Shown: positions 17,901-47,900, counted from the first letter of the stretch. The stretch: 64,000 nucleotides of DNA from Thalia democratica (GCA_965202585.1 OZ241829.1:6634001-6698000); one strand, 5' to 3'. Numbers and translations are program-made. The notes: generated by a model from the sequence alone, not told the origin.

Positions 17901-20900
17901 GGTAGAACTTGTTGTTTTTGTTGTCGTCGTCAACTTTCATGGAAAATTTGAGGTCGTCTCCGTTGTAAATTGTCGCGTTGTTGTCAGGTTTATCAATGTT
18001 TTCTGTTATAACAAACAGTTTAGAACATACAAACTTACAGTCATTTAAGAAAATAGCTTTGGTTGTATATACAAAACATTAAAATTATCGAAAACAAAAC
18101 TTCGTTTAAATTTGCTTTTAAGCTTTTGTTTTCTTTTAAAAAAGTACCTAAAGTATCTCGAGTTAAAAATAATTAGGACTTCTACCGAAAATGGTTACCA
18201 AATGCTGCAAAAGACTAAAAATTTAATTTGATTATGACGGTAAAATCATATTTATGCAAAAATAGGCACTAAGTTTTATATAAATCGTTCCAACTGTAAC
18301 TACAACTCACCCACGTAATTTATTTATCATATTTGTATTGTTAATCTTCATTCAGATTTATAAAAAATGTACATAAAAATATCATAGTTTATTTTTACAT
18401 AGGTAAATAATACTGTTACTCACCCAGGTAAGTGTCCATGACCAGTGGCAGCCTGCTTCCAACGCCCATTATGACGTAACTGACCTCGAACCTTAACTCT
18501 TCGTCCTTGTGGCCGAACAACAGCGATTCGTCGAAAAACTTATCCAGTACGAGTCCATCTAACAGTTCCACGCTGACTGTTTCGGTTGTGTTGAAGATGC
18601 TCGAGTCTGTCAAGGTGTGCACTGAAAACCTGGAAAAATTGATTCTTTAAAAATTTCTTCATAATATCGGATTTTAAGTTCATAACATCATTGAAAATAT
18701 TAAGCAATGAAAACCTGGGAAAGTTTTTGTTGAAAAAGTGGTTGATAAGATCGAAGGCAGGTTTTTAAATTCATAAGAAAGTTGAAAAAGTTAAGTAAGG
18801 TATTGTCATCAAGTTTGTTATTTATAATAAAGTAAAAACTTATTACACAAAAACTTTGACTTAATTCACGTCAAGTAAGTTAAGTTTTGTTGTTAAATTA
18901 GATTGCGAGAAATGCTTTAAAAAATGCCCTATTCAAGAAAACCGTGTTGATTATTTTACATTTAGTTCATCAAGCAAAAGTAACCTAGTCTGATCAATAG
19001 TTTCTTGAATGTTTGGATCAACTAGGACAATATGAGCTGTCACATTTGAAGTAGTTACTTCTCCAACTGGAGTTGGTGGGTAATCTGTACGAATTAAGTG
19101 AGTAATGTAACTTTTGTAGAAAAATAGTCAGAATTTTTCAAGAAAAAAAAGTTTCCAATGTTGCGTTTAATTATTTTCATAGCTATTTTTATCAGATTTC
19201 AAAAGTTGCATGCTGCTAAATGTATTAACAAAATTTATACTAAATTCCAATACAAGATGATTTACAACTAAATATGACGTCACAAAGAAACCTAACCTGT
19301 CCTCACTGTGGCTACGTGGTCCTCGTAGAAGTATCCCCTCTCAACCGCTTCAACTGTGACGTCATAATCCTTTCCTGGTACTAATCCCGTAAACACGTGA
19401 GTGATGTCATTGTTGGTGGTCACCAGACCGTAAACATCGTCTGTTGTGACGTCACTCAATTTAATTGTGACGTTGCTGTTGAACTCTTTGTTGTTTGTGA
19501 AGTCGACCGTGACGGTGGTGATTGAGGAAGTGACGTCAGCATCGCCCCATTTCAATTGTTCTGTTTAGCAATTAGCTATTTCAGAAAATATAAGCATTTC
19601 TTTAAAATTTACTACCATATCTTAGTTTAAGTAACGTTTTAACAAACGTCAAAAATACTACAGAAATAAAACTTTTTGTAAACTTCTTGCAACGATGTCT
19701 CCTTTCCTATACAAACTACTTTTTAAGAAAACACGAAATCACTAACTTACATCTTAACTAGTTTAAATATGATAAAATAAAACCATAGCACAAACCAGTA
19801 GTAAAAAGTCCAACAACATTCCACTCTGAGTTGATGTTACCATCTCTTCTTTTCACGCTTATTTCGTACCTATAATTACATACTTTGTAAACTTTATAAC
19901 TTATCATTTATTTTTATTATCCATAGTTAAATATTGTGTAAATTTAATTGTTTATATACTATAACTTCTTCTCACACTTATTTCGTATCTGAATTTACAT
20001 ATTTTGTAAGCTTTATTACTTATTACGTATACACTGATTTCATACCTGCTTCCCTTCTTGAAGTTGTACCAGTAGAAGGTTCTCCTGCCAACACTGCTAA
20101 ACGTGTAGTTGCGAAGATGGACCTGAAGCAGTATAAAACTTTTATTAAACTAACTTAAATTTTGTATGAGTGGAATAATGACTTGTGTAAACGATGAGTT
20201 GTTTTACTGTTTGAAAAATTTAAACAATATTTGACAAAAGTAACAAGTGCTGTTTCTTAAGTTGTAACGATGCTTTTAAAAAGAAATTTAGCAAGTTTTA
20301 TGTAATAGATAATTTTATGTAATTTTTATCAGTTGTGAAAATGTTTTTAACAAGACCATAAATTAAATTTATTTTCAAGAAGAAGGTATGAACAACTGCT
20401 TTAAAGTACGCAATTTCTTACTTTGAACACAATAAAAGGCAATAAAAAACGAGCAACTTGTAACTAACTTTTCCTTCTTCGTCGACAATCTTCACGAAGT
20501 AAACATTTTTCGGATCTGTAACTTGAATGTTGAATTTGAAGCTGGAAGGTCTCACCAGCTCCACATTGCACTCAGGTGGTGAAATATTTTCTGATTCATG
20601 ATAAATTATAAAAAGTTGAACAGCGGTATTATAAATTTTATTAAATATTTGCTGTATACTGCACTCGAGTGGATAGAAATTTTGATGAAAAGATATACAG
20701 CGTTAACAATTTTGAAAAAAGGTTTTATGTTTGTGAAGTATATAGATAGTAGAAACAGAGTTGAAAAGAAAACTTTTGTGTTTATTAATTACAACTTAAT
20801 CGCTGATTGAACCAAGTTTTAAAACTATTGTTTCAAGTATAGTTTTATATTAAAACCATAGTGTTTTATATTTATTACGCAAAATGAATTTTTTTGATTA

Positions 20901-26900: not shown

Positions 26901-29900
26901 TTTTTTTGAAACAAAGTTTTAGGCACACATACAAATTTAAATAAAAAATTAAAAAATATATATATAGTAGATAGACCAAATCAATGTGAATTAGAAAGTT
27001 TTAATGAAACAAAATTTTAGGCATACATACAAACTTCTAACCAGTAGTGATGTTGGTGAGCACGAGGTTGTCCTCTTCAAATGACGATAAGAAGCTAGTA
27101 TGAGTGGATGATCTTATTGTGTAAGATGTTGCTGGCTTCAAGTTGCTGAAGTTAACAACTTCTTCGCTATCTACCTCATCAGCAGGTAACTGTGTTTTTA
27201 TTGATTAATATAAGAATGGTTCCTGGTACAACATAAATATAAAGGTATGTAGAAGACAATTGCAACCGTTGGATTTTTAAAACTTTTTTGAAGTAAGCTC
27301 AGTTTTAATATCCTAAAGAAAGCAAATATTTTTATAGAAGTCTTAAACACCTTTATAGATAAATTATGTATTTGATTTTTACCTTAATAGTTTCAATAAT
27401 ATTCTCTTCATCGTTGTGTTTTGATATTGTGAACTGGTATTCCTCCACGTTTCCCCTCCTCGCTTTTCCGAACACGACCCTGATAGACGTCTCAGTCGTT
27501 CTATCGAGGTCCAAGTACGCTACTGGTCTCGGTCCTGTGTTTATTTTGTAATGAATTTATAAATATATTTTATGAGTTTATAACGCATGATTGTTGTAGA
27601 TAAACTAGACTTTGAGTAAAACTTTCTTTTAAATATTTTAAATTAATTTTAAACTTTTTTTACTCTCGTTTAATATATGCTTATGAAATTGTGTTTAAAT
27701 ATGGAACTAAAACTAAAGAAAAATTATAGCTAAGCAAAATAAATAGTCTTATACTCTCAATTACTCTGTACACTTTTTGTAAATTTGCAGAAACGTACCA
27801 AGCTACGTCCCTGCTCTCAATCACTCTGTACACTTACTTGTTGGAACGTGTTTGTCATCAACCACCAGGTACTTGACGTTGTTCATCCAAGCGTGCAATT
27901 TCACTTTGTACGTGGTTCCGCTCTCAAGTCCTTCTATCGTTACATCACTCTTTTTGATCCCTCTGAAGCTCATCGGGTTCCAAGTTGTTATGGGGCCAGT
28001 TTTCACAGGTACCAAAAGCTCTACTTCGTACCTCTGAGTAGGAAGTTAGTTTGAATTATTTCAATTTATAAAGTAACAAAAATATAAAAATGACCGATTT
28101 ACACACTTTAAATACATTTACAATAGTATTCTTTCTAGCTTACTTAAATTCATTAAGTTTTTAAGCTTTTCACGTAAAACAACTTATATTTTTTATTTGT
28201 AAATCCTACTTGCTGGTATCCTAAGTAATTGTAAATTTTATTATTATCATTATTTATTTATATTTTGCACATACTTCTGCATCCGGAATATTTTCCCACT
28301 CGAGGGCAAATGAGTCGTAAGTGTGATTGAGACTTCTTATCTGGGTATCGGGATTCAGCCTACCTGAATTTAAACATTAGTTTTAATTCTAATTTCAATG
28401 TAAACCCTGTATATCTCTTATGTTTGCTAGCATGTTAACAGATGTTATAGAGGTTTAAGGGTCGTAAACCAAGTGTTCAACACCCACCTGTTTTGATACC
28501 AACATTCGCCGAGTGAAGTTTTTCATTTCCGATGTAAGAGCTGATGACTATTTCGTAACTTTTAAGTGGTTTCATTCCGTTCAAAAATGTTGCTTCGTAG
28601 ATCTTTGAAAAACATAACGAGTTTAAGATTCAAATGTTATTTTTTGTTTGAAAATACAATTTATAAGCACATATACACGCAATAGTAACAAGAATTAAGT
28701 TTTGTTTAAATAAAATACTTTAAATTAAACTAAAAAATAGTTCAATAACACTTACAGATTTGTTGCTATCAAACTGCACGGTTCTTGGCGGAATGATGTC
28801 CTGTGGACGGTCCAATCTCGTGCATTTAACTATAAAGTAATCCATTGTGTACTTTGAAACGAATTTGACATTTGCTTTGTTAAACTTTGTGCCAGCTTCG
28901 ATTATTTCCACTATTGTTGCGTCTGAAACAGTAGTCATTTAAAATTTTACTTTCACTCTAAAGTCTAGCTAGACGAAGGAAATTTGAAATGAGAAAGTTT
29001 CAACTGTCTTCTTGATTTCGGAAGCCTAAAATCTAACTCTAGAATATTTTTGAAAATAATAAAAATTAAAAGAGTTCATTTATTTTTCAAAAAAAAACGC
29101 TCTTTTATACCTTATAGAAATAGTAAAAAAAAAATACTGGTTGGTATTGCAGCTATTGTTGTAGGTTTTTGAAATCTTTGATCGGCAGTAGTAGTCTTGA
29201 ATCTGGTAGTCATTTCAACTGTAGTTGGGAGCCTTGTCGTCATATCCATAGTAGTGTCACCTCTAGTGGACACTTCAACTGTAGTCAGTTCAGCAGTTGT
29301 TGAGAACGCAGTAGTTGGTGATTTAGTTGAAATTTCAACTGTGGTGTCGGCCCCGCTCGTTGCAGGAACCGAATTAAGCTCTTGCGGAGGTTCGGTTGTT
29401 CCCCGAGTTTGAGGCTGAACCGTCTCGACTATCAGCGTCGCGTTCTCAGTTGTGTACTCGACTGTGGTGTCATAAAAAGTTGTCATCTCTTCGGTTGTAG
29501 AGTCGACTGTTGTCATTTCAATTGTTGTGTCATCTATAGTAGTCATTTCAACTGTTGTATCACCTATAGTAGTCATTTTAACTGTAGTAGGATCTCTAGT
29601 AGTCATTTTAACCGTTGTTTCGTCAGTAGTTGTACCTTGAGTCGTTTCAACAATTGTAGTTGCTTCGCGAGTTGTGAAACTTTCTGTAGTCTGTTCAGAT
29701 GTTGTATCCTGAGTTGTTTGTTTCACAGTAGTAGATTCTGCACTTGTGAAATCTTCAGTTGTAACGTCTTGAGTGGTTGCAATTTCAGTAGTAGGCTTTT
29801 CTGTTGTTACATTTTCAGTCGTTGGTTTTCGTGTAGTTACCGACCTTGTACTAGATTCGTGTGTAGTTGTGACTTCTTGAGTAGTATGGTCCTTAGTCGT

Positions 29901-32900
29901 GGTTTGCTGAGTTGTCTCACTCTCTGTAGTTTGACCTTGGGTTGTTACAACCTGTGTAGTGGGAGCATCTGTTGTTTGCTCTTTGGTGGTAAAAACTTCA
30001 GTCGTCTCCTGAGTAGTATCAGTCTGAGTAGTAACTTCAAAAGTTGTTGCCGTCTCTGTCGTTGGAGAATATGTGGTTTGTTGCTCAGTTGTTTCGTCGA
30101 CTGTTGTCAACTCCTCGGTTGTATCGGCTCTTGTTGATGCTTTCTGAGTAGTAAGAGGCTCAGTAGTGACTTTTCGCGTTGTTTGAGCTTCTGTGGTGAG
30201 CTCTGTTGTCTCGGGCTGAGTCGTAGCCTCTGTTGTCGTTACTTTTTCTGTTGTTTGTTCCTGAGTTGTTTCGACTTCTGTTGTTGCTTCTGAGGTTGTT
30301 TCTTGCTGGGTGGTTTGAGCTTCAGTAGTTGATTGCTTAGTAGTAACTGCTTCTGTGGTTACCATTTCAGTAGTCTCCTGAGTAGTTGGAGGAGCTGTTG
30401 TAGTCTCAGCTGCTGTTGTTTCAGATATAGTTGTTGCTTCTGTAACGAGTTCAGTTGTCGTGTCAGCCTCTGTAGATAGTGCTTGAGTGGTTACAGTTTC
30501 TGTTGTAATTACAATTGTCGGTGGGCCATGAGTAGTATGATCTTTCGTTGTAGTTTCACGTTCAGTTGTTATTTCTGTAGTTGTAACAGCCTCGGTTGTT
30601 GGTTCCTGAGTAGTAACAGCCTCGGTTGTTGGTTCCTGAGTAGTAACAGCCTCGGTTGTTGGTTCCTGAGCTGTAACAGCCTCGGTTGTTGGTTCCTGAG
30701 TAGTCACAGCCTCGGTTGTTGGTTCCTGAGTTGTAACAGCCTCGGTTGTTGGTTCCTGAGTTGTGACAGTCTTAGTAGTTTTTTCTTGAGTAGTTACAGC
30801 CTCGGTTGTTGGTTCCTGAATAGTCACAGCCTCAGTAGTTGGTTCTTGAGTAGTCACAGCCTCGGTTGTTGGTTCTTGAGTTGTAACAGCCTCGGTTGTT
30901 GGTTCCTGAGTTGTAACAGCCTCGGTTGTTGGTTCTTGAGTAGTCACAGCCTCGGTTGTTGGTTCTTGAGTAGTTACAGCTTCAGTAGTTGGTTCCTTAG
31001 TAGTAACAGCCTCAGTAGTCAGTTTCTGAGTAGTAACAGCCTCAGTTGTTGGTTCTTGTGTAGTCACAGCCTCAGTAGTTGGTTCTTGAGTAGTAACAGA
31101 ATCAGTTGTTGGCTCTTGAGTAGTAACAGACTCAGTTGTTGGTTCTTGAGTTGTTACAGACTCAGTAGTTGGCTCTTGAGTAGTAACAGACTCAATTGTT
31201 GGTTCTTGAGTTGTTACAGACTCAGTTGTTGGTTCTTGAGTAGTAACAGACTCAGTTGTTGGTTCTTGGGTTGTTACAGACTCAGTAGTTGGTTCTTGGG
31301 TAGTCACAGACTCAGTAGTTGGTTCTTGAGTAGTAACAGCCTCAGTTGTTGGTTCTTGAGTAGTTATAGACTCAGTTGTTGCTTCCTGAGTAGTAACAGC
31401 CTCAGTTGTTAGTTCTTGAGTAGTCACAGATTCAGTAGTTGATTCTTTAGTAGTAACAGCCTCAGTAGTTGGTTCTTGAGTAGTTACAGACTCAGTAGTT
31501 GGTTCCTGAGTTGTTACAGACTCAGTTGTTGCTTCTTGAGTGGTTACAGATTTTGTTGTAACTCCAATTGTCGGTGGGCCAGGACTAGTATATTCCTTTG
31601 TTGTGGTTTCACGTTTAGTAGTTATTTTTATAGTTGTAAAATCTTCTGTTGTTGGTTCTTGAGTTGTTACAGATTCGGTTGTTGATTCTTGAGTAGTCAC
31701 AGCCTCTGTTGTTGGTTTCTGAGTAGTTACAGCCTCGGTAGTTGGTTCTTGTGTAGTCACAGACTCAGTAGTTGGTTTCTGAGTTGTTACAGATTCAGTT
31801 GTTGATTCTTGATTAGTCACAGCCTCGGTTGTTGCTTCCTGAATAGTTACTGCCTCGGTAGTTGGTTCTTGTGTAGTCACAGACTCAGTAGTTGGTTTTT
31901 GAGTTGTTACAGATTCGGTTGTTGATTCTTGAGTAGTCACAGCCTCGGTTGTTGGTTCTTGAGTAGTAACAGACTCAGTAGTTGGTTCTTGTGTAGTCAC
32001 AGACTCAGTAGTTGGTTTTTGAGTTGTTACAGATTCGGTTGTTGATTCTTGAGTAGTCACAGCCTCGGTTGTTGCTTCCTGAGTAGTTATAGACTCAGTA
32101 GTTGTTTCTTGAGTAGTAACAGCCTTGGTTGTTGCTTCCTGAGTAGTTACTGCCTCGGTAGTTGGTTCTTGTGTAGTCACAGCCTCAGTAGTTGGTTCTT
32201 GAGTAGTCACAGCCTCGGTTGTCGGTTCTTGAGTTGTAACAGCTTCAGTAGTTGGTTCTTGAGTAGTTATAGACTCAGTAGTTGGTTCTTGTGTAGTCAC
32301 AGCCTCGGTTGTTGCTTCCTGAGTAGTTACTGCCTCGGTAGTTGGTTCTTGAGTAGTTACAGCCTCAGTAGTTGGTTCTTGAGTAGTCACAGCCTCGGTT
32401 GTCGGTTCTTGAGTAGTTACAGCTTCAGTAGTTGGTTTTTGAGTAGTTATAGACTTAGTTGTTGCTTTCTGAGTAGTCAAAGTCTCGGTAGTTGGTTTTT
32501 GAGTAGTTACAGCCTCGGTAGTTGGTTCTTGCGTAGTTACAGACTCAGTAGTAGGTTTTTGAGTAGTTACAGCCTCAGTTGTTGGTTTCTGAGTAGTAAC
32601 AGCCTCAGTTGTTGGTTTTTTAGTAGTAACAGACTCAGTAGTTGATTTTTGTGTAGTAACAGCCTCGGTTGTTGGTTCTTGACTAGTAACAACTTTAGTA
32701 GTTGTCTGTTGAGTTGTTGTAGCTTCTTCAGTTGTTTGCTCTGAAGTTGTTAACTTCATTGTTGTTTCAGCAACTGTAGTAGCTTCTTGAGTTGTCACTT
32801 GAACTGTACTAGCTTCTGGAGTTGTCACTTGAACTGTAGTAGGTTCTTGAGTAGTATCTTGGACTGTAGTAGCTTCTTGAGTTGTCACTTGAACTGTAGT

Positions 32901-35900
32901 AGCTTCTTGAGTTGTCTGTTGGACTGTAGTAGCTTCTTGAGTAGTCTCAGCGACAATGGTACTTTCTGGAGTTGTTTCAGCTGCTGAGGTTAACTTTACA
33001 GTCGTAGTGATGCTAACCGTCGTGGGTTCCATAGTGGTCACCAAAGACCCCTCTGTAGTCTTGTACTCGACAGTCGACAACTCAGTTGTAGTTTCGGACG
33101 TTGTTTGAGATGTTGTCATGACAACGGTTGTTTCCGGTTGAGTGACCACTGTGGTGTCGGCTTGCACGGTTGTCGTTTTAGCTTGGGTAGTGTACAGTTG
33201 GGTAGTGGTTTGCTGAGTAGTTGCTTCCGTGGTCGTTTTTACGGTAGTTTCAGCTTCAGTTGTTGCTTCGGTTGTTGTTTCAGCTTCAGTTGTTGCTTCA
33301 GTTGTTGTTGCTTCAGTAGTTGTTTCAGCTTTAGTTGTTGCTTCAGTAGTTACTGCTTCAGTTGTGGTTGTTGGTGGTTCAGCAGTTGTTATGGTAACAC
33401 CAGGCTCTGTTTTACAGTATTTGAATTAAGTATCATTTTTCTTTTAGGATTTTGGCATTTTTGAATATTTGTAAAGTCCTCGATAAATAAAAGAAAAAAA
33501 TGTGAAAGTTCAATTTTAAATATTATGTTTTATTTTAATTTTTTTTTTCTCATGAAAAACTTACTAAACTGAATACAACTCACCGTTGCACTTGAGGTTC
33601 TTGTTCTTGAAGTTTTCGGTGAAGAACTCCAACTCCTTGTAGTTTCTCAGCCCCACGAACCTGTCGGGAGTGGACACGATGTCAACGAAATCCTCATCCC
33701 TGATTGTGATACCCACACCGAAACCCGTGATAGTTGCTCCCATGGCTTTCAGGTTTCTGTTTAAACAAACAGTTTGGTATTTTAATAGCTTTAGTATACC
33801 TAATTAATTTTGTTTGTTTAATTTTTCAAACATGTTTTGGTTTGTTACAATCAAAAATTAACTTTTTAATAAAGGTTTATAAAGACCTTGCGACAGATAC
33901 TGCATCATCTACCGCAAAAATAAAGAAGAAAAAAGTATAAGATTATTTTTATGTAAAGTATATTTTACATACCTATTAACTTCAAATACTGTTAATTTAA
34001 TACAAATATTCTCACCTTGCAACAGATACTGCATCGTCGGAACTCGGAGAGGTTGCAATGAAAATGATCAGATGCTTTTTATCTTTCCTGATTCCGAGAT
34101 TGCTTATTTTCGCCATCTCACCCAGCTGTTGCAGAGCTGTTACAGATTTATTTAAGTCTGTATTACAGTGCTTCAATAAGTTAGTTTGTTTTGTTATCTG
34201 TTATCTAATGTTATAACTTTAGTTATCTAAACTTAGTTACTTAAATTTTCACAACTCAACTCAGTTTTTTTTTAACATGCAGTGTTTATCGCAATTGAAA
34301 AATCAATCTAAACACTAAAAAAATGTTTTAAATTTAACTTAGAATAAAAAACCTTGTCCGAGCCTGTTACCACCATTCCTGTACGGTCCGTCCCTGAAAA
34401 CCTTGGCGATCTGGTCCATGACTGCTTCCCTGTCGTAGTGGGAGTTGAAGGGGAAGATGTTGAAGGAGTCCATGTTGTACACAGAGAAGGAGATCTGATC
34501 CTTGCTGGATCCCTCCACCTGTGTCATTTCCACTATCGATCTGTGTTTGTTTGTTTACAATAATTTTATTTATTTAGATATTTATTTATTAAACATTCAA
34601 TTGAGCATCAGCAACTAGAACACAAGTGCAAGCTTGTTTTTGCAATGAAACAGTTTATAAGTATTGTTTATTGAAAGAAAAAAAAATACGCTTAAAAAGT
34701 TTGGTCCAAGGATCTGGTGTACGAAAAGCCCTTTGGTTATCGAGTCGTGCACCAGAACAGTTTAATGTAAATCCAGGACATGAAACTAAAGGTTTTTGAA
34801 GACTGGCTATGCTTTTAGACAATTGAAACTACAAAGTTGTGAACCATTAAGTTTATATCTTGTTTGCAGCTTCAACAACAAACCTTATGAGCTCGGTGAC
34901 GATCTCTCCCTGTTTTCTGCTCATCCTTTTGTTGAAGTGGTAAACGAAAGAGATGTCCAAAAATTCCCGCGTTTTATTTGAATTCTCACACTCGAGTGCG
35001 CTGTTCAGTTGTAACATAATTAATTTGATTTTTACATGTGCTTTGTCGTTAATAGTGTTATAATAAAAGTATTCAAATGAGACATAAATTACTAAACTGT
35101 TAAAGTTTGTTAAGTTTATTGATTTTAATAAATTTATTAAAATAACAAGCTATTTGTTCTATAACATATTGATATAGAATTTATATCAACTTTATAAAAA
35201 ATAAGATTTGTTAGCTTAAAAAGCTTTTAAATAAGTGTTTTAAATATTTTCTTTTCAACAATAAATAGTATAACTATATTGTTGAAAGTTATATGTACAT
35301 ATATATGTATATAGTACACATCTATTCACTATTTCAGTAATAAACAAACCTTAATCTTTATTGTTTGAAGTTCCATAGCACCAAATAAAAAGTAAAAAAT
35401 ATAAAACTATGTAGTATAGACATTAAAGAACAGTATTTACCAAAAATATGTACAACTCATTTTTATTAACAGTGATTATAGTTGATTTTTATGAAAAAAC
35501 TCAAACTTACGGCGTCAACACTTCAAGAAGATCTGTAAGGAGAGAAAACAGGTTTATTAATTAAGCATTTTACTCTAAATTAAACAGTAAATTCCCAATA
35601 GTTTACAAATATTTCAGTAATTTCTCTTAAAAATTAATGTTTTCATCAAACGTAGATATAAATATTTTATTACTAGTTTCTTGAAAGCTAAACTCAAAAA
35701 TGTGTTTTATTTAGCTTTTATTTAACATTTTTATTTACAAACATGAAAAGTATATTTTGTAACAATATAACCATTATAATTAAATATTGTATATATATTT
35801 TTAGTTCGGTTACCACATTCAAACACAAACCTTGCGTCTTGACTTCCTTCAACGCGACGAAGTTGGACGCCTTGCCGCTGTACGTTTGTATGACAATCTC

Positions 35901-38900
35901 ATACCTAGAAACCATCATTGTTACATATTGTTACAAACTATCTAAATAAAAAGTTTCATGTACGTTTGTATGACAATCTCATACCTAGAAACCATCATTG
36001 TTACATATTGTTACAAACTATCTTAATAAAAAGTTTCATGTACGTTTGTATGACAATCTCATACCTAGAAACCATCATTGTTACATATTGTTACAAACTA
36101 TCTAAATAAAAAGTATCATGTACGTTTGTATGACAATCTCATACCTAGAAAATATTATTGTTACATATTGTTACAAACTGTCTAAATAAAAAGTATCATG
36201 CGCGTTTGTATGACAATTTCATACCTAGAAAATATTATTGTTACATATTATTACAAACTGTCTAAATAAAAAGTTTCATATACGTTTGTATGACTATCTC
36301 ATACCTAGAAAATATTATTGTTACATATTGTTACAAACTGTCTAAATAAAAAGTATCATGTACGTTTGTATGACTATCTCATACCTAGAAAATATTATTG
36401 TTACATATTGTTACAAACTGTCTAAATAAAAAGTATTATGTACGTTTGTATGACTATCTCATACCCAGAAAATGTTATTGTTACAAGCAACCTATTGTAA
36501 TAAAAAGTATCACGCATGATTGTAGTTATGTATGGCAGTTTTGTACGTATGTTATAGAGTTTTTTGAAACATACAATCTATCTGTTTATAAAGTATCATT
36601 TATAATTGTATGACTGGTTCGTACCTGGTATCAGGTCTGAGGTTGGTGAAGTAAACCTGGCCTATCGTGGTTCGTTTGCTCTGAATCGGGCTTCCTACCA
36701 GGTTACCATCCTCGAATAGTTCCAACTGTGAAAAAATAGTTTGAATAATTTCAAGAGGAACATACTATTATTTCAGCGATAATAGTTTTAATTGTTTTAC
36801 TAACTACTTTTGTTTAAAACAGCTTTAATTAATGCATGGGTTTTATTGCAGTAGAAAATAATCTATCATATAGTGTTAAACTTTGTGTTGTATTTTTTGA
36901 AAAATAGTAACTGTTAAAAACTATTGTCGTTTTAGCAATTAATTTAGTTTACCTTTTAAGAATACGTTTGTATTACATCGTTTAAAACACTTATTAAATA
37001 AATAACTTTTTTATGGCTTAACTTACGTTATATACATATAATGAGATCAGTTAGAATTAACTTTACAGTATTCAAAATTCATACTAAGAATAAAATAAAA
37101 TAAAAACAAACTAACAATATAATAATATAATGTAAACTAACAATATAATAAAATACAAATAAAACTAACAATATAATAGTTCCAGTCACCCTTTGCTAGT
37201 TCGAAATTAATTTTTGCAGTTTGGAAGGTTGTTTCAACATTTTCAATAGTTACTGTAGCTGGCACTATAGAAATACAAAATGTTTTAATTCGTGCTTTAT
37301 TTTAAAACATTATTCCTTAAAATGGTGTTTGTTAGCTTTTATTACCCTTTTTTGTTGCCACAATTAAGCGTTTTAAGTTTTTTATAAAAACTATTCAAAT
37401 TTGAAACTTGGCTTTTAATAAATGAGCATCAAGGTTTGTACTTCAAATTTAGTTTAACAAAAAATAATTAAAACGGTTATAACAAATGTTTAAATAGCAC
37501 CTGATTTTAAGGAACTTATACAGTTGAATGATTAAATAAGTTTGAAAAATTTAATAGAAGTACGTTCATAATTCAAACGTTTAGACAAATTACATAAAAA
37601 TTTCTTTTCAAACAGTTTTACATAAAACCTTGCAAAAACTAAAGTGTTTATTAACAACAGATACATGTTAAATTAAAAAATCCTCATATTTCTTAAAATA
37701 TTCAAATTAAGTTAATTAAGAATTACTTTTAAAAGGAAATTAAGTCGATTATTTTACTCTATGTTTTCTTTTGCGGTTTAAGTTTTATGTAAAACTAATT
37801 ACGTTTGAAACACCTTTACACCACATTTTATAATTATACTTATACTTTAATTAAAAAAAAAATTAAAAAAAATGTTTTTGGTTTTCTACAAGCAAAACTT
37901 TTTTTGAAAAGAACTAAGTTTCAAACAAAGTTGTCTATAAAATAAACTAATTAAACTTAAAATCAAAAAGTTCACTTAAAAGTGTAGGTCATGAATATTA
38001 ACTTGGTTTCTTAACACACACTATATACTTTATGTATTTGAAATAATGAATTATAAATATCAAGTCTACGACGACCAAATGTATGCAAAATGCTGAAGGT
38101 AAAATACTTTCACATGTATTTCATACTGACAAGTTTTATAATTGTTATGAACAGCTAATTTACTTAAAATATTGCAATTCACTATCATTAAACAAAAACA
38201 AATGTTAAATACAAAATCTTTGAGTTTGACTATTTATAAAAAGATTATTCTTTACACTGTATATTTGTTTAAATTATTTTCAAACTAACAAGTTCTGAAA
38301 GAGTTGGGTCCGGCCACTAGTACGTACTTATCAGCGTACAGCGATGCGTTGTACAATCTGCCAGGGGTGTAACCCTCGAATTTCATGGGGGTGTTGTCCA
38401 CTATGCGGCGCTGTTCAACTTCTTGCGTTTTCAAATCCAAAATCTAGTAAAAATAGAGTTTGTGTTTATTAACATTTTAGATTACTAAAAATTTTGTACA
38501 AGTAATACGTTAAGTTGTTTGTAAGATTTACCAAACATTCTTTCAATGTTGTCACATTAAATATATAAATTACCGTTAACTGAGGTAATCTACTCTTTCC
38601 TTCAAAATTCGATTTAATACTTTTCTCTGAAAATGACCACTGAAGGTCAAATATGTTGCTAAAATTGATGTTGCAATATTTATGAAGAGGAAGTAAGAAC
38701 ATTGTTTTTTACAAAACTAAAGTTTGCAAAATTGATGTTTACGAAACAAAAAGATTATCTAAAGGTCAAGCACTACTTAAAAAGCTATTTTTTTTGTTTA
38801 AAAGCTATACTTATATTAAAATTTATAAAGAATTAGTCTATATATAACTAACAAAAATATTTTTCAAAACATTTTATAACGAGAAAACCTGTAAAAAAAA

Positions 38901-41900
38901 AAGCTTTTAAATATTCATTTAATATTACAATTATCTAAACAGTACTAATTTTTTTTTCATAAATTAATGAGTGATTGAAATAACTAATTTAAAAGTAAAT
39001 AAGTTGACTAACGTTGTTAACGTAAAACTTTTGTACAAATTATATACTTTACTTCAATTAAAAATAGTTCCAAGAAATAACTAATGCTAACCTCAAGCAA
39101 AATATTGTCTTCGTTTTCGAAGTCTTTCGGAGGAAACACAACAAAAGAAGTCGTTGTTATGTTCTTTATCTTTATTTGGATGGTGGCTGTAAATAAAAAT
39201 ACCTTGTTATCTCATATTTATAAATAAACGTAACATTACCGTTTGATTAACGAAATTGTCATTCTTTCTCAGGTATTTTTAAATCGTTTAAACCTAATTA
39301 AGTTTGCACAAAACAGATAAAATTGAGAAAAGTTTAAGTTTTATTTTTAATGACAAAGTAATATACGTATTTGGACTTTTTTTTTGACTAACAATTTTCG
39401 ATTACCTGCATTTCAAAACTAAAGTAAACATAATTGTTCGCAGTGTTGAAGCATAATTTTTATGCTTTTTAGTCTTTAATTATTAAGTCTTAGCGTAAGT
39501 TTGTTTATATATAATGCACAAATGGCTACAAACGGTAAATATTTCAACGTTTATCGACATAATATTCACTCAAAACAATAAAATAAAAAATGTTTACGTA
39601 TAAATGATGTTTTAGTTGAAAGTTTTTTTTTAAACAAATCCTGTTATTACAATACTCCATTGAAAATATAAGGGCTTATTTTAAAAGGCAATGTTTGCTA
39701 TTAAATCAAACTACTGTTTTTATCTTTTCTAACAATGTTGAGACTCAGTAAACAAATTAAGTTACAATTTAGATGCATATTTATATTGGTGAAAAACAAA
39801 AGTTTTAAGTTTTATCACTTAATTAAAGTTTCGAGTGTGAGTTTGACAGCAGAATTATGTTAATAAAGAAACAAATTTGTGTCAAAAATTTTAACCACAA
39901 TAAAATATAAATATATAGTTAAAAATAAAACAATTGAAAAAGTAAAAAACTTAAATTTAAGAATACTATCTTAAAACTATATAAAGAATCCACTTGAGTA
40001 TTCTACAAACAAAACAGTTTGTTTATAAGTTTTAAAGAACGATCAACAAAACGTTTACTACGATAGACTAAATACAGGATAACTGTAAAACTAATAAGTT
40101 TTTACGAGAAATTTTTTTAATTAACTTTCTTGAGTAAACATCACTGTTGCTAAACTACCACCAAAATAGCAATATGATATAGTTGTAATGTTGTTATTAT
40201 GACGTCATAGTAACAACAAAACTAACATGTAACGCTGATGCCGTATAAGTAAGTGCTTGCGTACAATTCACCGCTGTTTGTTTTTATTATGACGTCATAA
40301 CTACTATACGGTTCCACGCCGGTGAATGTGACGTCACTATCGGTTGTTGTTTGAGAATCGACAAGACGCTTCAGAGGCGACGTTGTGTATAGCTCCACCT
40401 GTGAGAATCAATTGTTTATTATCAGATTATTTTAAATTTGATATACTGGTCATTTAAAATGAAGAACACTTTTTTGTATAAATTTGGAAAATGTTTACAA
40501 GCACTTTTATTATAGGAAAAACTTTATTATAACGCTTAAATCTAGTTTATTTTGAACATACACTTTAATTTTTCCTAAACAATTTTTTTTATAAATCTTA
40601 TTTAAAGTATAAATTAAAGGTTCTGTATTATTAAAAAACAAAGATTTAGTTTAATAGTAGCATTTCTTTAAGATTACATAGGTTAAATCTAGTATACAAA
40701 ATTATTATTAAAAACAAACAAGGTCTTTCACTAAACACATATATTTTTCAACAATTTTCATCAGTACGTTACAGTTGTTACAAAATAAAGAAAATATTAG
40801 AATATTAAAAATTATAACTAAAAACAAGAAGTACAGCAACTTCAAATGCAATAAAAACATCCTCAATATTAGAACATTTAATTAAAACTCCTAATTGTGG
40901 AAAAAGTTACAATGAAATGAATTTTAGATTATTAAGAAGTTTTAATAATATTTATGACCTCATCAAAATTGATGGCATATACATTCATTTAAATAAACCA
41001 AAATTATGCAAACAGAGAGAATTTGATTGATCGTTGTCCTTGTTTCAGTTAATTAGAGATCTTATGTTATGCTTAAATGTTTATTTAGAATTTTGATTAC
41101 TTTTTTGTTTTGCTTGATTAACTAATTTCTGATGCAATTATAAGGCTATATAAGTTAAATATTTTCTTTATTTTGTAACAATAGTAACACACTGAGGAAA
41201 ACTGTTGAACTATATATGTGTTTAGTAAAAGACCTTGTTTGTTTTTATAAAGTACAGTAGCAGACTAATGTTTAAAATTACTATTAGTCATGTTGTTTAA
41301 ACAATAACTTGCATTAAGTAAAAAAAAAATCAAGTATTTCTTAACTTTGAAAAATTTAATTGATTTAGTTTAAAGCGCGTCGATAGCGTTTCAAATATTA
41401 TTTTTATTTGTTTTCAAATCACAACGCTTAATTGTCTGTTAATTTAAAAGTTTAAACAAACCTTTATATAATAACAAACCATAAACATTTGCGCTCTAAA
41501 GGTTTTTCGTTACATATTGTAAACTGGACGGTAATTTAAGTTACAAGGTTTAAATAAAATTCTATTTTAAAAATTCGTACCACGAAACTTGAAATCAGTT
41601 ACATGAAATCAATTAAAGCAATTAATACTTAAATATATTAAAAAATACTTTTTTGTAAACTTTTCTTGAATATACGCTGTAAGCGTTTGGTCAACGCATA
41701 GAATTTATATAAAATATTATATTTAATGCTTTATTTATAGTATAAATTTAAAATCAAACCGTGTAATCATCCCAGTCTCCGATGGCGAAATCGAAGTTTA
41801 ATTTAATTGTTTGATCGTTGTATTCGTAATTCACCGTTTTGACAGGTGCAGGTTCTGTATAAAAATATAAATAATTATTTAATTGCAAACTTATATTTAA

Positions 41901-44900
41901 ACACCTTGATATATTGGTTGCGTTTTTATAACTTTCATTTAAATCGTTTAAAAGTTTCTTTTGTTTAGACAAGTTTCTGTTGTTAGCTATGCTAATTGTA
42001 TCATCTAATAAAACCTTAATAAAGTATTAAATTCTTGTGTACTAGTGAACAATCTAACAATTTATTAACGATGAGGGTTTTTATAATTAACGATTTTTTG
42101 TCTTTGTTAACAGGATAAACAGCTTTATTTGTCTTATTATAAATTACTTAAAATATTTATAACAAAATATTTGTGTTAACCAAAGTTTCTTTTAAAGTTG
42201 TGTTTAATAGTTACATACATAGTACTTATTGTATTTTAACATAAATAAAAAATTACAAAAAGTAAGTATAGTTATTTTCTAAAACAGAGTTTATAACGTA
42301 TATTATATTTTATAAAACCAGACGTTTAAAAAACTAAAGTTGCAAATATTTCATGCGAAGAATATATATAAGTTTCATTTTAATTATCGGTAAAAAATTG
42401 TACTAACTCTTGAAGATAAACTAACGAGTTCTGGTGAGCACGGATAATTTGTTGTTAAATATATACTTATTAAATATATTTAATGTTAAATTAAAATTTT
42501 AAATACATTTTTTGTTCAATTTTTTTATAAAATTATAATAAACTAACGAGTTCTGGTGAGCACGGATACTTTGTTGTTAAATACATTTTAATTAAATATT
42601 TTTAATATTAAATTAAAATAATAGATATATTTATTATTTTATTTTTTTGTAAAGTCATAATAAACTAACAAGTTTTGGTGAGCACGGATACTTTATTGTT
42701 AAATATATTTTAATTAAATGTGTTAAATATTAAATTAAAACATTAAATATATTTTTTTAATCATAAAAAACAAACGGGTTCTGGTGAGCACGGGGCCGAC
42801 AAGGAACGAATCGAACTCGGTATGCAGGGTCAAGTTGTACTGTCTCCCTGGAACTAGGTTGCTAATGACAACGGGATCCAACGACGTGATCTCGCGGAAG
42901 ATGCCGAACGAAGAGTTCTTCGCGTCTGTCAGCTGAAAAAAGTTTCAAAAAAATCTGAAAACTATTTTGAACAGCAAAGGTGTTTTATCAATGCTTACAC
43001 TACTTTACTTAAACACAACTTCGAAATATTTTTTAAAGATTGAAACACTATTATATGTTTTGGTTTTAAGAAAACAACAAATAGAGAGATCTCAACTACT
43101 GAATCAAAAATAATAAAATATTTTAATAAAAATTGAAATACTTTTAATATCAAATAAAACCATTTTGGAATAAAATTTTATGCTCATGCACAGATGTTAT
43201 ACTCACAATAACGTGTAACTTATTTAGTTAATTAGTTCTGTTAGAACAATTTTAAAGTTTTAAAACCTCGATATAAGGATAGTCTTCAATGTTCAAATTT
43301 TGAGGCGGAACGATCGTCAGTGACGTCATAGTTATGTTTGTGATGAACATTTCGTAAACTTCCTTTTCATCTGTAAAATTAATCAATTATTTAGAATTTT
43401 TGATATGAATAAGTAATAACATTAACACTACCAAGTAAATTTAGGTATAAAAATACATAGTTAGAACTGTTTTATTAAATTTTTGATGACTAAAATTTTT
43501 GTGTCTTGATTAACAATATAAATAGAGTCTGAGCTTAAAAATTATAAAATACATTTACAAGTTGTTCGTACAGCTACTAATCTTTGAACAGAAATGCTTT
43601 TTGAAGGAACTAATATCAACAACAAACGTTTAGTGAATGTTCCCCGTGAAGCTTAGGTAGCTCGACCCAGCTACTACCAACCAAGAAATTTTCACATTTT
43701 GCTTATAACAAAAAGACATAAAAATAAATTAATACCAAGCTACCATGTAAAATAACAGTAGAATAAGCACAAACAAGCTAAAAAACAAACGTTTGGTGAA
43801 AATTCCCCTGAAACTCGAGTAGCTGGACCTAACAACCAATAAAAAGACGTAAAAATAAATTAATACCAAGCTACCATGTAAAATAACAGTAGAACAAGCA
43901 AGTCAAAAAACAAACGTTTGGTGAAAATTCCCCTGAAGCTCGAGTAGCTGGACCTGTCCCCGCTGACGGTTTCGATCAGCAATTCGTAACTTTTGTTTTC
44001 TTCCACGTCCTCGAAGATTGCCGTCCCATTTTCCACGACGTCCTCGTCCATGAACTCCCTGCCCGGGTCCGTGTACAGTTTGACCTGTGAGGAGAAAAAA
44101 TATTAATATTTTGTAAAAATAATGAAACTTAAGTCATTTTGATAAGATTAGTGTATGGATTAACTTGTGTTCGAAAAACTAGCAGTCATAATGTCAGCAA
44201 ACGTATTCAATTGATTATTTCGATTTTATTTGTTCTTTAGATTGTTTGTTGGTATGTAATATTAATTGAAACCTGTAAACAATCTTTATTTGGTATGTTT
44301 TTTAACTTAATACAAACTTTTACAAATGGCTACAGATTTGTGCTTAGTAAACTGTTTAGGGCTTTACTAGATATCTAAGAAATTTGGCTTAAATAACAGT
44401 TCTAAGTTTAAATTTTTTCTCAAAAGAAATGCGCCTAATGAAACAAAAATGCTTCTAGTCAACTACTTGTTTAAAAGATATTTAAACTAGTTCATATATT
44501 TTCGTTGTGAATAGTAAAAACTTGAACAACTCTTAAACTTAGAGTTAAGCTTCCATTCTTATAACAGTTTTTGTATAAGAATTTTGAAATAGTAAATTTA
44601 TTAATGAAAATTCTTCTTAGTACTTACGTCATAATAGTCAAAATCTCCTTCCACGATTTTGAACTCGAACTTCAAGTCTCCGTTTTTGTATTCGTATGTC
44701 AACCAAGTTACTGGCAGTGGCACTGAAAAAAGTTTTATATCAAAATAAATCATTATTTGTAGGGACTATTTTTACCATTTGATTCTTAATGTTGTGCAAC
44801 ACTGTTGTATTAAACATAAAATTTAAATAATTTGTGTGCAATAACTTATTTTTAAAATGAACAGTTTACAAAACGAAAACAATCTTTATAAGCTTAATAG

Positions 44901-47900
44901 TAACCGAATGAAATTTGTTTGTTTAAAAAGTAAACACCGAAATGATTAAAGTTAATAAAAGAACAATTAATTGCGGAACAGATATACAAACAAACTCACT
45001 AGTTCTCACAGATACGGGTCCGGCTACGTAGCTACGAACATCGGTATGAAGGGACACGTTGTACAACCTTCCGGGGATCAAGCCTACGAAGTGGAGATCT
45101 CTGTGATCGACAATCTTCAAAACGAACTGGTCCCTAGTGATCAAGTCGCTCACCTGGGATTGAAGCATCATGTTAATATTGTTGTTCATTGTTATTTTAT
45201 TATTTTTCAAGCAACGTGTGTATTATTTTGTGTTCAAATATCTTCAATACGAGTGGTAAGATTGCTTACCTTGAAGTTGGCATGTAACAACATGTTTTCA
45301 TCAACAACTTCTAAAGCTTTTTATAAAATGTGGTTTAAACCAAACCTTTCTTTGTATACCTTTAAAAAGTATACTTCTAATTAATTAAATTGATTTTTCT
45401 AACCTCAACATAGGGATTGTTTTCAATAATGAATTCCTTCGAAGGTGTCACAGTAAATGAAGATGTTGAAACGTTGCTTATACTGATTGTCATTGGTGGT
45501 ACAGCTGTTGAGGTATTATTGAACAAATATTTTAAATATAAATCAACATATTTGACAAATTTGATAATAATTGTAAATACGTGAAACATTATAGATACAA
45601 GTAGTTAAAGGAGTTATGTATGAAGCACAGCAATAAAAGGTAGTTTATTCCGAAAAAACACATTTAATAAAACAAAACAATGTTTTAATCTATTGTTTGA
45701 GTTGTTTAGCTCAAATCACGCATGTTTTTAACAAAAAAAAAATCTAGCGCACAGTATACACTTATCGACTTATTACAGTTAATAATTGTGACATTAATTG
45801 AAGTTAATCAGGTTCAAGTTGAAAATATTTTGTGTAAATACTGTTATGTCTTTTTACACAGCAAAACGTCACCTTTGTTTAATTTAGATTAACTTTAATT
45901 TGGGGGCTGTTGAGTTTACTTAACTTTGTTTCAAAACAACTTAACAAATTAGTTAAACCGCAAACGTAAGCGTAGTTTTTATTATCTGAGTGTAACTAAA
46001 TATAAACAAATTGCCAAATATTATTGTTTATTAATAAGCCAGCCGAGTTCGCTGTTTGTGCCGATTTCAAACAATTTAAAGAGCTTGTTTATATTTTATT
46101 TCGGAAACTATTTCAAACAGGCTTTGTTTATACTGCTTGCTTTAAAAGGTCAAACAGGTAACTTTTTAGATGTAAAAATATATTAAAGTAGTTTTTAACA
46201 AGTTTGCTCAACTATGCAAGGTTTATAATTTAATGACGGTTTTTGATTAACTGAAAAATACCAAAACTGGATATGAACAATAGTTTTTGAAATATACAAC
46301 AGTATGTTTTTCAATGAAACATTTTAAACTAGTTTAAAAGGCTGAAAAAAAAGTAATCTAAAATACTAATGAAAAATATAAATGAACATGTGAGTCAATG
46401 GCTGTAAAAGTTTATAAAGTTTTTAAAGCGTAATAAGCTTAATATATTTAAACTAAAACAAGTGGATTACAAGTTAAACCACTGAATTAAACTTATGAGA
46501 CTGATTAGTAGTAAGTTGATTTGAAGACTTCAACTAAAACAAAAACGACGATGTTTTTGATAAATTTTAAAGCACAATAAATTTTAAGCTAAAGTATTTA
46601 GTTGTAAATTTAACTATCAATCAACGAGGTTTAATAACTATGCTTTTAGACGAAATAAAGAACATTTTTAGTTTAAAAAAAAGAAAAAAAAAACTTAAAA
46701 TTTACAATAATAAAACTCAACATACGAGGCTTAAAAAGTTAGACTGCCAAATTAGGTTTATGAGACTAATAAATAATAAGTTGATTTGAAAATTTGAATA
46801 CATTTAAAACTAAATAACGAGATTTAACCAAAAAGCTTTCGATAGAACAAATAATTTAACTTGGACTATTAAAATAAAATGTTCTTTAAAATTAACAATA
46901 ATAAAATTCAACATACGGGGCTTGACAACGATGTTTTTGATGATCTTCTTGGCTTCCGTCCTGTTCACATCTCCGCTCACAGTGGTGACCTCCAGTTCGT
47001 ATCTGATCAGGGGCTTCACCGTTTCAAAGCTGACCCGACCCACGTTTGTAATTTTACTGTCCACTAGTTGACGGTACATGTCCCTGGTGTACAGGTCCAC
47101 CTGAAAGTTGTGAAAATATTTGTAAAAAGTTTTATATGTTTATTATATAAAATATATATATTTTTATCAGTATGTACAGAGTGACCGGTAATTTATACAT
47201 ATTGTAAACTTCAAGTTATCTTATAATTCTTGTCATATTAACTATATGTGTTTTTATCAATATGTAGAGGTCTACTGAAAGCGGTAATTTTACGTATAAC
47301 AGACTGGTCATTTTATAACAAAAATATTGTGTAAAAAGATTTTTTTTTTTCCCTAAATAACAACATAACTTTTATAATATATTAGTTTTCATCAGTTTTT
47401 ACACAGTTTATTTTGTTGAAACCTGGTCTTAATTATAGTTTAAATCATAATGTATGATGTTTTATTTTAATAAAATATTTAACACATTGAAGTAGATTAG
47501 ATAAAACGACCAATCTATGAATTAATTCCGTTAGCACAATCTTAAACTAAAGAAACGTGAAACGTATTTACTTTGGGCTTTCAAACACTTCATACTTATG
47601 AAAATTCTCAAAAACTTCACTTTCTATTATGCCCAAAATGTTTGAAGCTTAAACAACCTTGACAGCTTACATTGTTTTTGTAAAACAACATAAATGTTAT
47701 AAAGCACGCCTTTAGTAGTTAATTATTTTCAATTTGTTAGAGAAAGTATGTTTGTTTTGACTTGTCAAAGAGTCAAAATTAAGACAGATGTTTATAGTAT
47801 TTTTTAAGCTTTACTTATTTGCTTATCTTTGACATATTTTTACATACTCTAGTACACTACGATTTTTAAAGTATGATAAGTACACATCTGTTTTTTACTT

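Follow-up and report, generated by a model that had tools for sequence, protein, structure and literature searches.

Results

Gene setting of the repeat-filled intron

We analysed a window of 64,000 nucleotides (nt) from the genome of Thalia democratica (GCA_965202585.1 OZ241829.1:6634001-6698000), and the subject of this study is a 720-nt intron in this window that is built of tandem repeat units throughout. The window is AT-rich (about 25-36% G+C, one exon excepted), and the open segments on its minus strand, which cover nearly its whole length, encode many FN3-like half-domains, one VWA domain and a Thr-rich mucin exon. The host gene is a giant FN3/VWA/mucin gene. From 49 to 35.8 kb, it comprises four tandem modules, each of which consists of two FN3-like domains, and every domain is split over two exons. 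The intron under study falls in the last exon of module 4, an exon of the type that we call B, between the segments B1 and B2 (Table 1). On the minus strand, the donor reads ACCAG|GTACGAACCAGTCATACAA, with 36625 as the last exon base, and the acceptor reads TCTAG|GTATGAGATTGTCATACAA, with 35904 as the first exon base. The 720-nt element is a spliceosomal intron of the ordinary type and interrupts the F-strand codons (Arg|Tyr-Glu) of one FN3-like domain.

Splicing of the intron

The RNA evidence comes from run X6 of organism A and consists of one assembled contig of low depth, beside which minor products are possible; the run is judged to be RNA because its contigs skip introns. The contig, 322 nt in length, maps to 35831-35901, 36622-36725 and 37177-37264, and its letters are contiguous over the first join. 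It has zero mismatches on both 36622-36725 (B1) and 35831-35901 (B2). Letters 98 and 99 join positions 35901 and 36622, and exactly 720 nt are removed; the join is ambiguous by 3 nt because GTA opens both the intron and the next exon. The assembled transcript joins donor 36625|36624 to the last, exon-proximal acceptor 35905|35904. This is the junction that an earlier reading made from the sequence alone (hereafter the sequence-only reading) had predicted, and the donor, the acceptor and the 720-nt length that it gave are all borne out. No X6 RNA contig lies inside the array. Moreover, splicing restores the coding sequence, and the product aligns to its paralogues without an insertion or deletion at the site.

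Repeat architecture

According to Tandem Repeats Finder, the array occupies 35879-36485 with a period of 80, 7.6 copies and 95% matches, and it reaches 26 nt into the downstream exon; a separate repeat search found the 80-nt spacing all along the array. The array starts exactly at the donor, with the first base of the intron, and in 80-nt frames counted from there the intron is composed of two old, decayed units followed by seven young ones. Each unit couples the 26 nt that open the next exon to a 54-nt AT-rich tail that ends in TTTTCTAG and holds two TGTAAC branch-point-like motifs, a pyrimidine run and an AG. The unit straddles the 3′ splice site, joining intron tail and exon start, and the first 26 nt of B2 (35879-35904) form a partial tenth copy of the repeat.

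The two old units are still recognisable. In a local alignment at offset 0, positions 10-53 of unit 1 pair with positions 10-53 of the unit consensus at a score that 0 of 2000 shuffles reach, and because this alignment spans the exon-derived part as well as the first 27 nt of the tail, unit 1 is a copy of the whole unit. Unit 2 also aligns to the consensus (0 of 2000 shuffles reach the score). In addition, the first 26 nt of the intron and of the exon are identical at 17 positions, which is the best match among the first 60 offsets (binomial P about 1e-4; 0.003 without the first six donor bases).

Pairs of young units differ by 1-9 nt of 80, and two subfamilies can be told apart, one of units 3-6 and the other of units 7-9. 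The sequence-only reading had counted eight or more TAG|GTAT acceptors; the correct number is seven (six internal sites and the real acceptor), to which one TGG|GTATGAG is added. It had also described the intron as exactly nine times 80 nt. The nine units and the 720 nt are correct, but the exactness has no meaning: the length is incidental, because indels in the two old units compensate for each other and because this pair of units occupies 145 nt in a relative.

The intron in relatives

Relatives were recovered as metagenome contigs, Tara Oceans contigs among them, by searching with the open reading frame (ORF) of the neighbouring exon. Contigs L005, L006 and L004 (about 85-88% DNA identity) have the same exon pair and the same donor position, and their 145-nt intron contains only the two old units. 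In L003 and L007 (about 75-84% identity), the intron is 460 nt long and contains five mutually diverged units of 99, 117, 81, 80 and 83 nt. A copy of the exon start can still be recognised at the head of each unit (p <= 0.007), and the first unit begins at the donor. AG|GTA is kept at three of the four internal boundaries of L003. The independent ocean-metagenome assemblies agree on the intron structure (L003 with L007, and L005 with L006), and the introns of L003 and L007 differ at 1 of 460 nt. The last codons of the upstream exon vary as GAC ACT AG, GAT ACC AG and GAC ACC AG, which represents synonymous turnover beside the donor.

The start of the exon matches the start of the intron at offset 0 in all three lineages (17/26 in the window, 19/26 in L003 and 17/26 in L005); among the first 60 offsets, offset 0 ranks first in each. 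The statement of the sequence-only reading that the intron begins with a decayed copy of the exon start has been upheld by this register and by the offset-0 alignment of unit 1. Orthologues of unit 1 were found in L003, L004 and L005, and an 8-nt insertion (AATCATG-like) is common to unit 2 of the window, unit 2 of L005 and units 2-4 of L003. In all three lineages, the array follows the donor directly, with no residual non-array sequence before the first unit. The spliced protein is identical to that of the window at 57 of 58 residues in L003 and at 56 of 58 in L005, at a DNA divergence of 12-25%; the exon is probably functional, given that the protein is kept despite the divergence of the DNA. 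Organism B, which is about 99% identical, has the same donor and the same old units (contig 36407-36674, with two substitutions). The short-read contigs of organisms A and B leave the array unassembled. Organisms A and B and the two diverged relatives all have the intron, and no presence/absence polymorphism was seen among them.

The comparison of the orthologous locus, which the sequence-only reading had advised, has located an array-intron at the same place in two relatives. Both of them already carry the intron; therefore, it is not recent. As judged by this comparison, the array-intron is older than the split of the three lineages, and their common ancestor had at least two units. The seven young units are missing from the closer relative L005 and are specific to the lineage of the window. 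The number of units (two, five and nine) is, by the same comparison, labile.

Beyond these relatives, protein searches returned no more distant orthologue. The spliced domain of 58 amino acids had no match as a protein query, and phmmer with a VWA exon returned only a metagenome ORF of 72 amino acids and shark and ray collagen-VI-like proteins at 33-35%. A scan of JGI metagenomes returned only a PhoD-like FN3 of a high-GC bacterial type.

Paralogous domains without the intron

The spliced 58-residue product has its best alignments with the B exons of module 1, module 3 and module 2. Each of these runs through the site as a single open segment, as the sequence-only reading had maintained. Together with 16 more, these three closest paralogues make up 19 other FN3 second halves in the window that are uninterrupted at the homologous Tyr. 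Just one other domain is interrupted at the site, a distant paralogue at about 20 kb that is not close kin. The sequence AG|G TAY was found only in the two intron-bearing domains, and the paralogues show AGA, AGT, AAG and other triplets before the Tyr codon. According to parsimony, the intron was probably gained in the module-4 lineage after the modules had diverged. Protein identity among the modules has by now fallen to only about 30-35%, and therefore a long time span is allowed for the gain.

Other duplications across splice sites

The interrupted paralogue at about 20 kb holds a second intron of the same geometry (Table 1). It contains two similar tails and an internal copy (TTCAG|ATACGAAATAAGTGTGAGAAGAAG) of the first 24 nt of its own exon. 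The copy is identical to the exon at 21 of the 24 positions, with a score that was reached by 0 of 2000 shuffles; in register with the donor, the exon start is matched only weakly (p = 0.03). A search for relatives of the exon of this second intron (20045-19870) found none.

In the B exon of module 2, the last 38 nt of the exon, the donor and 87 nt of the intron are tandemly duplicated. Both copies are preceded by AG, and either could act as an exon end. This duplication looks like a young analogue of the process that built the array-intron. At another site, an exon end and its donor are duplicated about 120 nt apart (…CATACAC.TCCTTGA.GG…AGCAGAAAG|TTTGT…). With these cases, small duplications across splice sites are frequent at this locus.

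Origin of the 54-nt tail

The end of the upstream exon is the source that a purely exonic duplication would predict for the tail. In local alignments against shuffles, the tail of the window consensus has no significant similarity to it (p = 0.27-0.47), and neither have the tails of the five older units of L003 (p = 0.70-0.98); transition-tolerant scoring of the same comparison likewise gave nothing significant (0.05-0.96). The sequence-only reading had itself cautioned that some 55 nt of the unit do not clearly resemble the upstream exon, and that caution was justified. Neither the remainder of the downstream exon nor the beginning of the next intron shows a significant similarity to the tail under strict or transition-tolerant scoring. 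In the L003 units, the copies of the exon start have kept 65-85% identity, and an exon-derived tail that decayed equally should therefore have left a signal. Such an unrelated tail is a better fit for filler than for exon duplication.

Several candidate sources were rejected. Likenesses of the tail noticed by eye (CAGGTTTAC with CAGTTTGTAAC, and GCGTCAAACTTT with GCATAATACTTT) were lost on shuffling. Duplication of the whole exon as the source of the unit (the 74 nt of B2 plus 6 nt, giving 80 nt) fails because the tail is unlike the rest of the exon. A weak match of the unit at 51933-52173 belongs to a separate AT-rich duplication of an exon end. No further significant copy of the unit was found in the 64-kb window, and the depth of the unit in DNA runs is ordinary, in contrast to the depth of about 1e5 at the true dispersed repeat (34597-34767).

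Further features of the host gene

The micro-exon between B2 and the first VWA exon has support from RNA: the loose end GGCGTCAACACTTC of an X6 contig at 35000 matches 35511-35524. The near-identical copies at about 11000-15400 are a recent tandem duplication of an entire FN3 module. Table 1 also lists the mucin-like region and a dispersed repeat of extremely high copy number that lies within an intron.

Table 1. Coordinates of the array-intron, its flanking exons and units, and other features of the window
Feature	Position	Strand	Description
Upstream exon B1, 101 nt	36625..36725	-	FN3-like second half, first part; open frame; acceptor ttttcacag|; ends ...GAT ACC AG
Intron, 720 nt	35905..36624	-	GT..AG; phase 2 (AG|G TAT GAG = Arg-Tyr-Glu); tandem units throughout
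Old unit 1	36545..36624	-	begins at donor GT; decayed exon-start copy and first part of tail
Old unit 2	36465..36544	-	decayed; ends TTTTCTGG, acceptor AG lost
Seven young units, 80 nt each	35905..36464	-	mean pairwise identity 93%; 26 nt identical or near-identical to exon start
Six internal AG|GTATGA junctions	36385/84, 36305/04, 36225/24, 36145/44, 36065/64, 35985/84	-	
Downstream exon B2, 74 nt (YEIVIQTYSGKASNFVALKEVKTQ)	35831..35904	-	begins G TAT GAG ATT
Paralogous B exon, module 1 (closest)	46917..47100	-	uninterrupted; site ATC AGA TAC GAA
Paralogous B exon, module 3	40227..40398	-	uninterrupted; site AGT AGT TAT GAC
Paralogous B exon, module 2	43916..44084	-	uninterrupted; site AAA AGT TAC GAA
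Second intron, same geometry, 176 nt, two units	19870..20045	-	homologous codon (AG|G TAC GAA) in a distant, non-sister FN3 paralogue
Tandem duplication at module 2 B exon, 125 nt	43704-43953	-	exon end, donor and intron start
Duplicated exon end and donor	~51960-52170	-	
Micro-exon, 22 nt	35511..35532	-	flanks ttacag| and |GTAAGT
Dispersed repeat within intron	34597-34767		summed word depth ~1e5 in genomic runs X1 and X3; many contigs break there
VWA domain (Pfam PF00092)	34342-34554		E = 5e-4
Mucin-like region, Thr/Glu/Pro-rich, single 4.3-kb exon	29115-33425	-	~71 copies of a 30-nt (10-aa, TTQEPTTEAV-like) repeat
Near-identical copies (19/20 at many sites)	~11000-15400	-	spacing 1685-1686 nt

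Discussion

A proposed gain by duplication with filler, followed by growth

We favour, with modest confidence, the view that a duplication of the exon start, accompanied by filler DNA, gave rise to the intron at an AG|GTATGAG site and that growth as a minisatellite followed. According to this view, the intron would have arisen after the domain family had diversified, at a coding AG|GTATGAG site, and the founding event would have duplicated the start of the downstream sequence and set AT-rich filler between the two copies, a duplication-insertion of the type that error-prone break repair or template switching may leave. The donor would have been supplied by the GT of the first copy, and the acceptor by the AG of the filler. 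The heptamer GTATGAG resembles a donor and is imposed by the Tyr-Glu codons that follow a codon with a final G. With this strong donor-like sequence at the start of the exon, later tandem duplications across the acceptor would have been harmless, every extra acceptor directly preceding a donor. The array has the features of a minisatellite, namely head-to-tail units in a copy number that differs between relatives (9, 5 and 2), and the expansion after the gain that the sequence-only reading had proposed agrees with the restriction of the seven young units to the lineage of the window. Its attribution of the gain itself to tandem duplication of an AG|GT site stands in one half, the exon-start copy in register, and falls in the other, since the 3′ part of the unit is not a copy of the upstream exon.

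Several points weigh against the view that we favour. No orthologue without the intron was found among the relatives recovered, which leaves parsimony among the paralogues as the sole argument for a gain. The evidence on the founding event that comes from within the intron is indirect, as the oldest units are already copies of the complete unit. The exon-derived repeat measures 19-26 nt or more and thereby exceeds the 4-12 bp of the Daphnia neointrons discussed below. The tail has not been traced to any of the sequences with which it was compared. Finally, the 6-mer TGATAC, which opens the tail, also occurs just before the end of the upstream exon of the window (3 nt from it) and hints at an exonic origin; this hint is weak, in that the codon is GAC in L003 and L005 and the match there is only 5/6.

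Alternative origins

A pre-existing, unrelated intron could instead have been the starting point, if tandem duplications across its 3′ splice site built the array and its original 5′ part, from the donor (CAG|GTA) to the boundary of an internal unit (TAG|GTA), was then deleted through the microhomology of these two sites, so that the array came to lie flush with the donor. We regard this course of events as possible, though on the unlikely side. The seven young units are just such acceptor-spanning duplications within an existing intron, other duplications that cross splice sites occur in the same gene, and duplications across an intron-exon boundary have a precedent elsewhere (PMC4974935). 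The rapid shifts in unit number (2, 5 and 9) mean that deletions do occur, and a tail that resembles no exon is readily accounted for. However, an extra and precisely placed deletion is needed, with the same outcome also in the second intron; the absence of residual non-array sequence extends to all three lineages; and the earlier gain of the intron is left unexplained, as 19 paralogous domains lack an intron here.

The classical model of Rogers and Hellsten, in which a wholly exonic AG|GT segment of 80 nt or shorter is tandemly duplicated, would require that the copy of the upstream exon has decayed beyond recognition, and we consider it quite improbable for this locus. The model has been demonstrated by experiment (PMC3265369), and it predicts what is seen at the ends of the intron: an exon-start copy in register with the donor, AG|GT at both junctions, and a paralogue-like frame restored by splicing. 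The shared TGATAC can be read in the same way, because a primordial duplication of 35 nt would yield the observed unit junction ACA|TGATAC. However, an intron of 35 nt is too short for most animals. The TGATAC match, as noted, falls to 5/6 in both L003 and L005. Furthermore, neither the window nor the units of L003, which are less homogenised, show any likeness between tail and upstream exon (p 0.27-0.98), although the exon-start copies in the same units are 65-85% identical.

The insertion of a small mobile or introner-like element whose target-site duplication supplied the splice sites is very improbable, for although the geometry fits (a target repeat at both ends, and an intron composed of the insert and one copy of the repeat), no second significant copy of the unit occurs in the 64 kb, the depth of the unit in genomic runs is ordinary, an insert of 54 nt is far too short, and a repeat of 19-26 nt far exceeds typical target-site duplications.

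Possible recursive splicing

Each of the six internal TTTTCTAG|GTATGA sites juxtaposes an acceptor and a donor consensus (Yn-AG|GTRNGN). The whole intron might accordingly be read as an array of working zero-length-exon (recursive, dual-specific) splice sites that is removed stepwise, unit by unit, a reading that we consider unlikely. If an internal acceptor were used, a donor would be created anew and the message left intact. At the old boundaries, AG is sometimes lost with GT kept (unit 2/3 of the window and unit 3/4 of L003), or both are lost; GT is never lost alone, in what are small numbers. Such a pattern of loss would be compatible with selection that acts on acceptor and donor as a pair. 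A counter-example to the retention of GT is found in the second intron, whose internal copy reads CAG|ATACGAA and has no GT. If the recursive reading were true, any duplication across the acceptor would be spliced out as a matter of course, and AG|GTAYGAR codons in this domain family would be hot spots for the birth and inflation of introns, a signature that is seen in two non-sister domains.

Significance and comparison with known systems

Well-documented cases of the origin of a new spliceosomal intron in animals are few. In the present case, related lineages show one and the same intron at three stages of its growth (two, five and nine units), and to this are added RNA proof of splicing and about 19 paralogous sites in the gene that lack the intron. 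Of each unit, the AGGT duplication model accounts for no more than half, which points to duplication with insertion of filler. The donor-like start of the exon, which would render duplications across the acceptor harmless, may explain why the growth was tolerated. The intron has no known effect on the protein.

According to the classical model, tandem duplication of an AGGT-containing segment generates an intron; this was demonstrated experimentally in 2011 (PMC3265369), and cases have been described in Drosophila (Lehmann et al., 2010; PMC2891723). Our intron resembles these in that it opens with a copy of the start of the next exon, has AG|GT at both junctions, restores the frame when spliced and has paralogues without an intron. 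It differs in that its 3′ part holds no recognisable copy of the upstream exon and in that its unit has been multiplied to 2-9 copies.

In the potato RdRp gene, the tandem duplication extends across an intron-exon boundary (Ma et al., 2016; PMC4974935). Similarly, the young units of the array duplicate the 3′ end of an intron together with the start of an exon, and the branch site, the pyrimidine tract and the AG are taken from the parental intron. In contrast to the potato gene, the exon piece here begins directly with GT, and there is no mini-exon between old and new introns, which are fused into one compound intron; moreover, no parental non-array intron sequence survives.

In Daphnia, neointrons that arose through break repair have the terminal bases of the adjacent exon directly repeated at the intron's opposite end, as well as internal direct repeats (Li et al., 2014; PMC4202315), and the neointron repeats measure 4-12 bp (PMC4202315). 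Our intron shares with them the adjacent-exon repeat at the opposite intron end, the frequent internal direct repeats and inserted DNA of unknown origin. Unlike the Daphnia neointrons, it has repeats of 19-26 nt or more and is common to three diverged lineages, and presence/absence polymorphism was not seen.

Dual-specific AG|GT sites can be used as both 3′ and 5′ splice sites, and a tandem array of such sites occurs in the polyubiquitin gene UBC (Duan et al., 2024; PMC10809524). The six internal TTTTCTAG|GTATGAG acceptor-donor pairs, which likewise stand in a tandem array, are like these in sequence only, and the units here are non-coding, whereas those of UBC are protein modules.

The array invites one further comparison, with introns that consist of tandem arrays as a whole. 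Such introns, formed in humans from arrays of the variable number tandem repeat (VNTR) type and with alternative splicing between units, were reportedly described by Zhuo and co-workers in PNAS in 2007. As in those introns, the units here carry their own splice signals and the whole array acts as the intron; unlike in those introns, a single constitutive product was seen. An intron derived from duplication is of a kind already known, and the present case is a multi-stage example of this kind that introduces no new mechanism or type of element.

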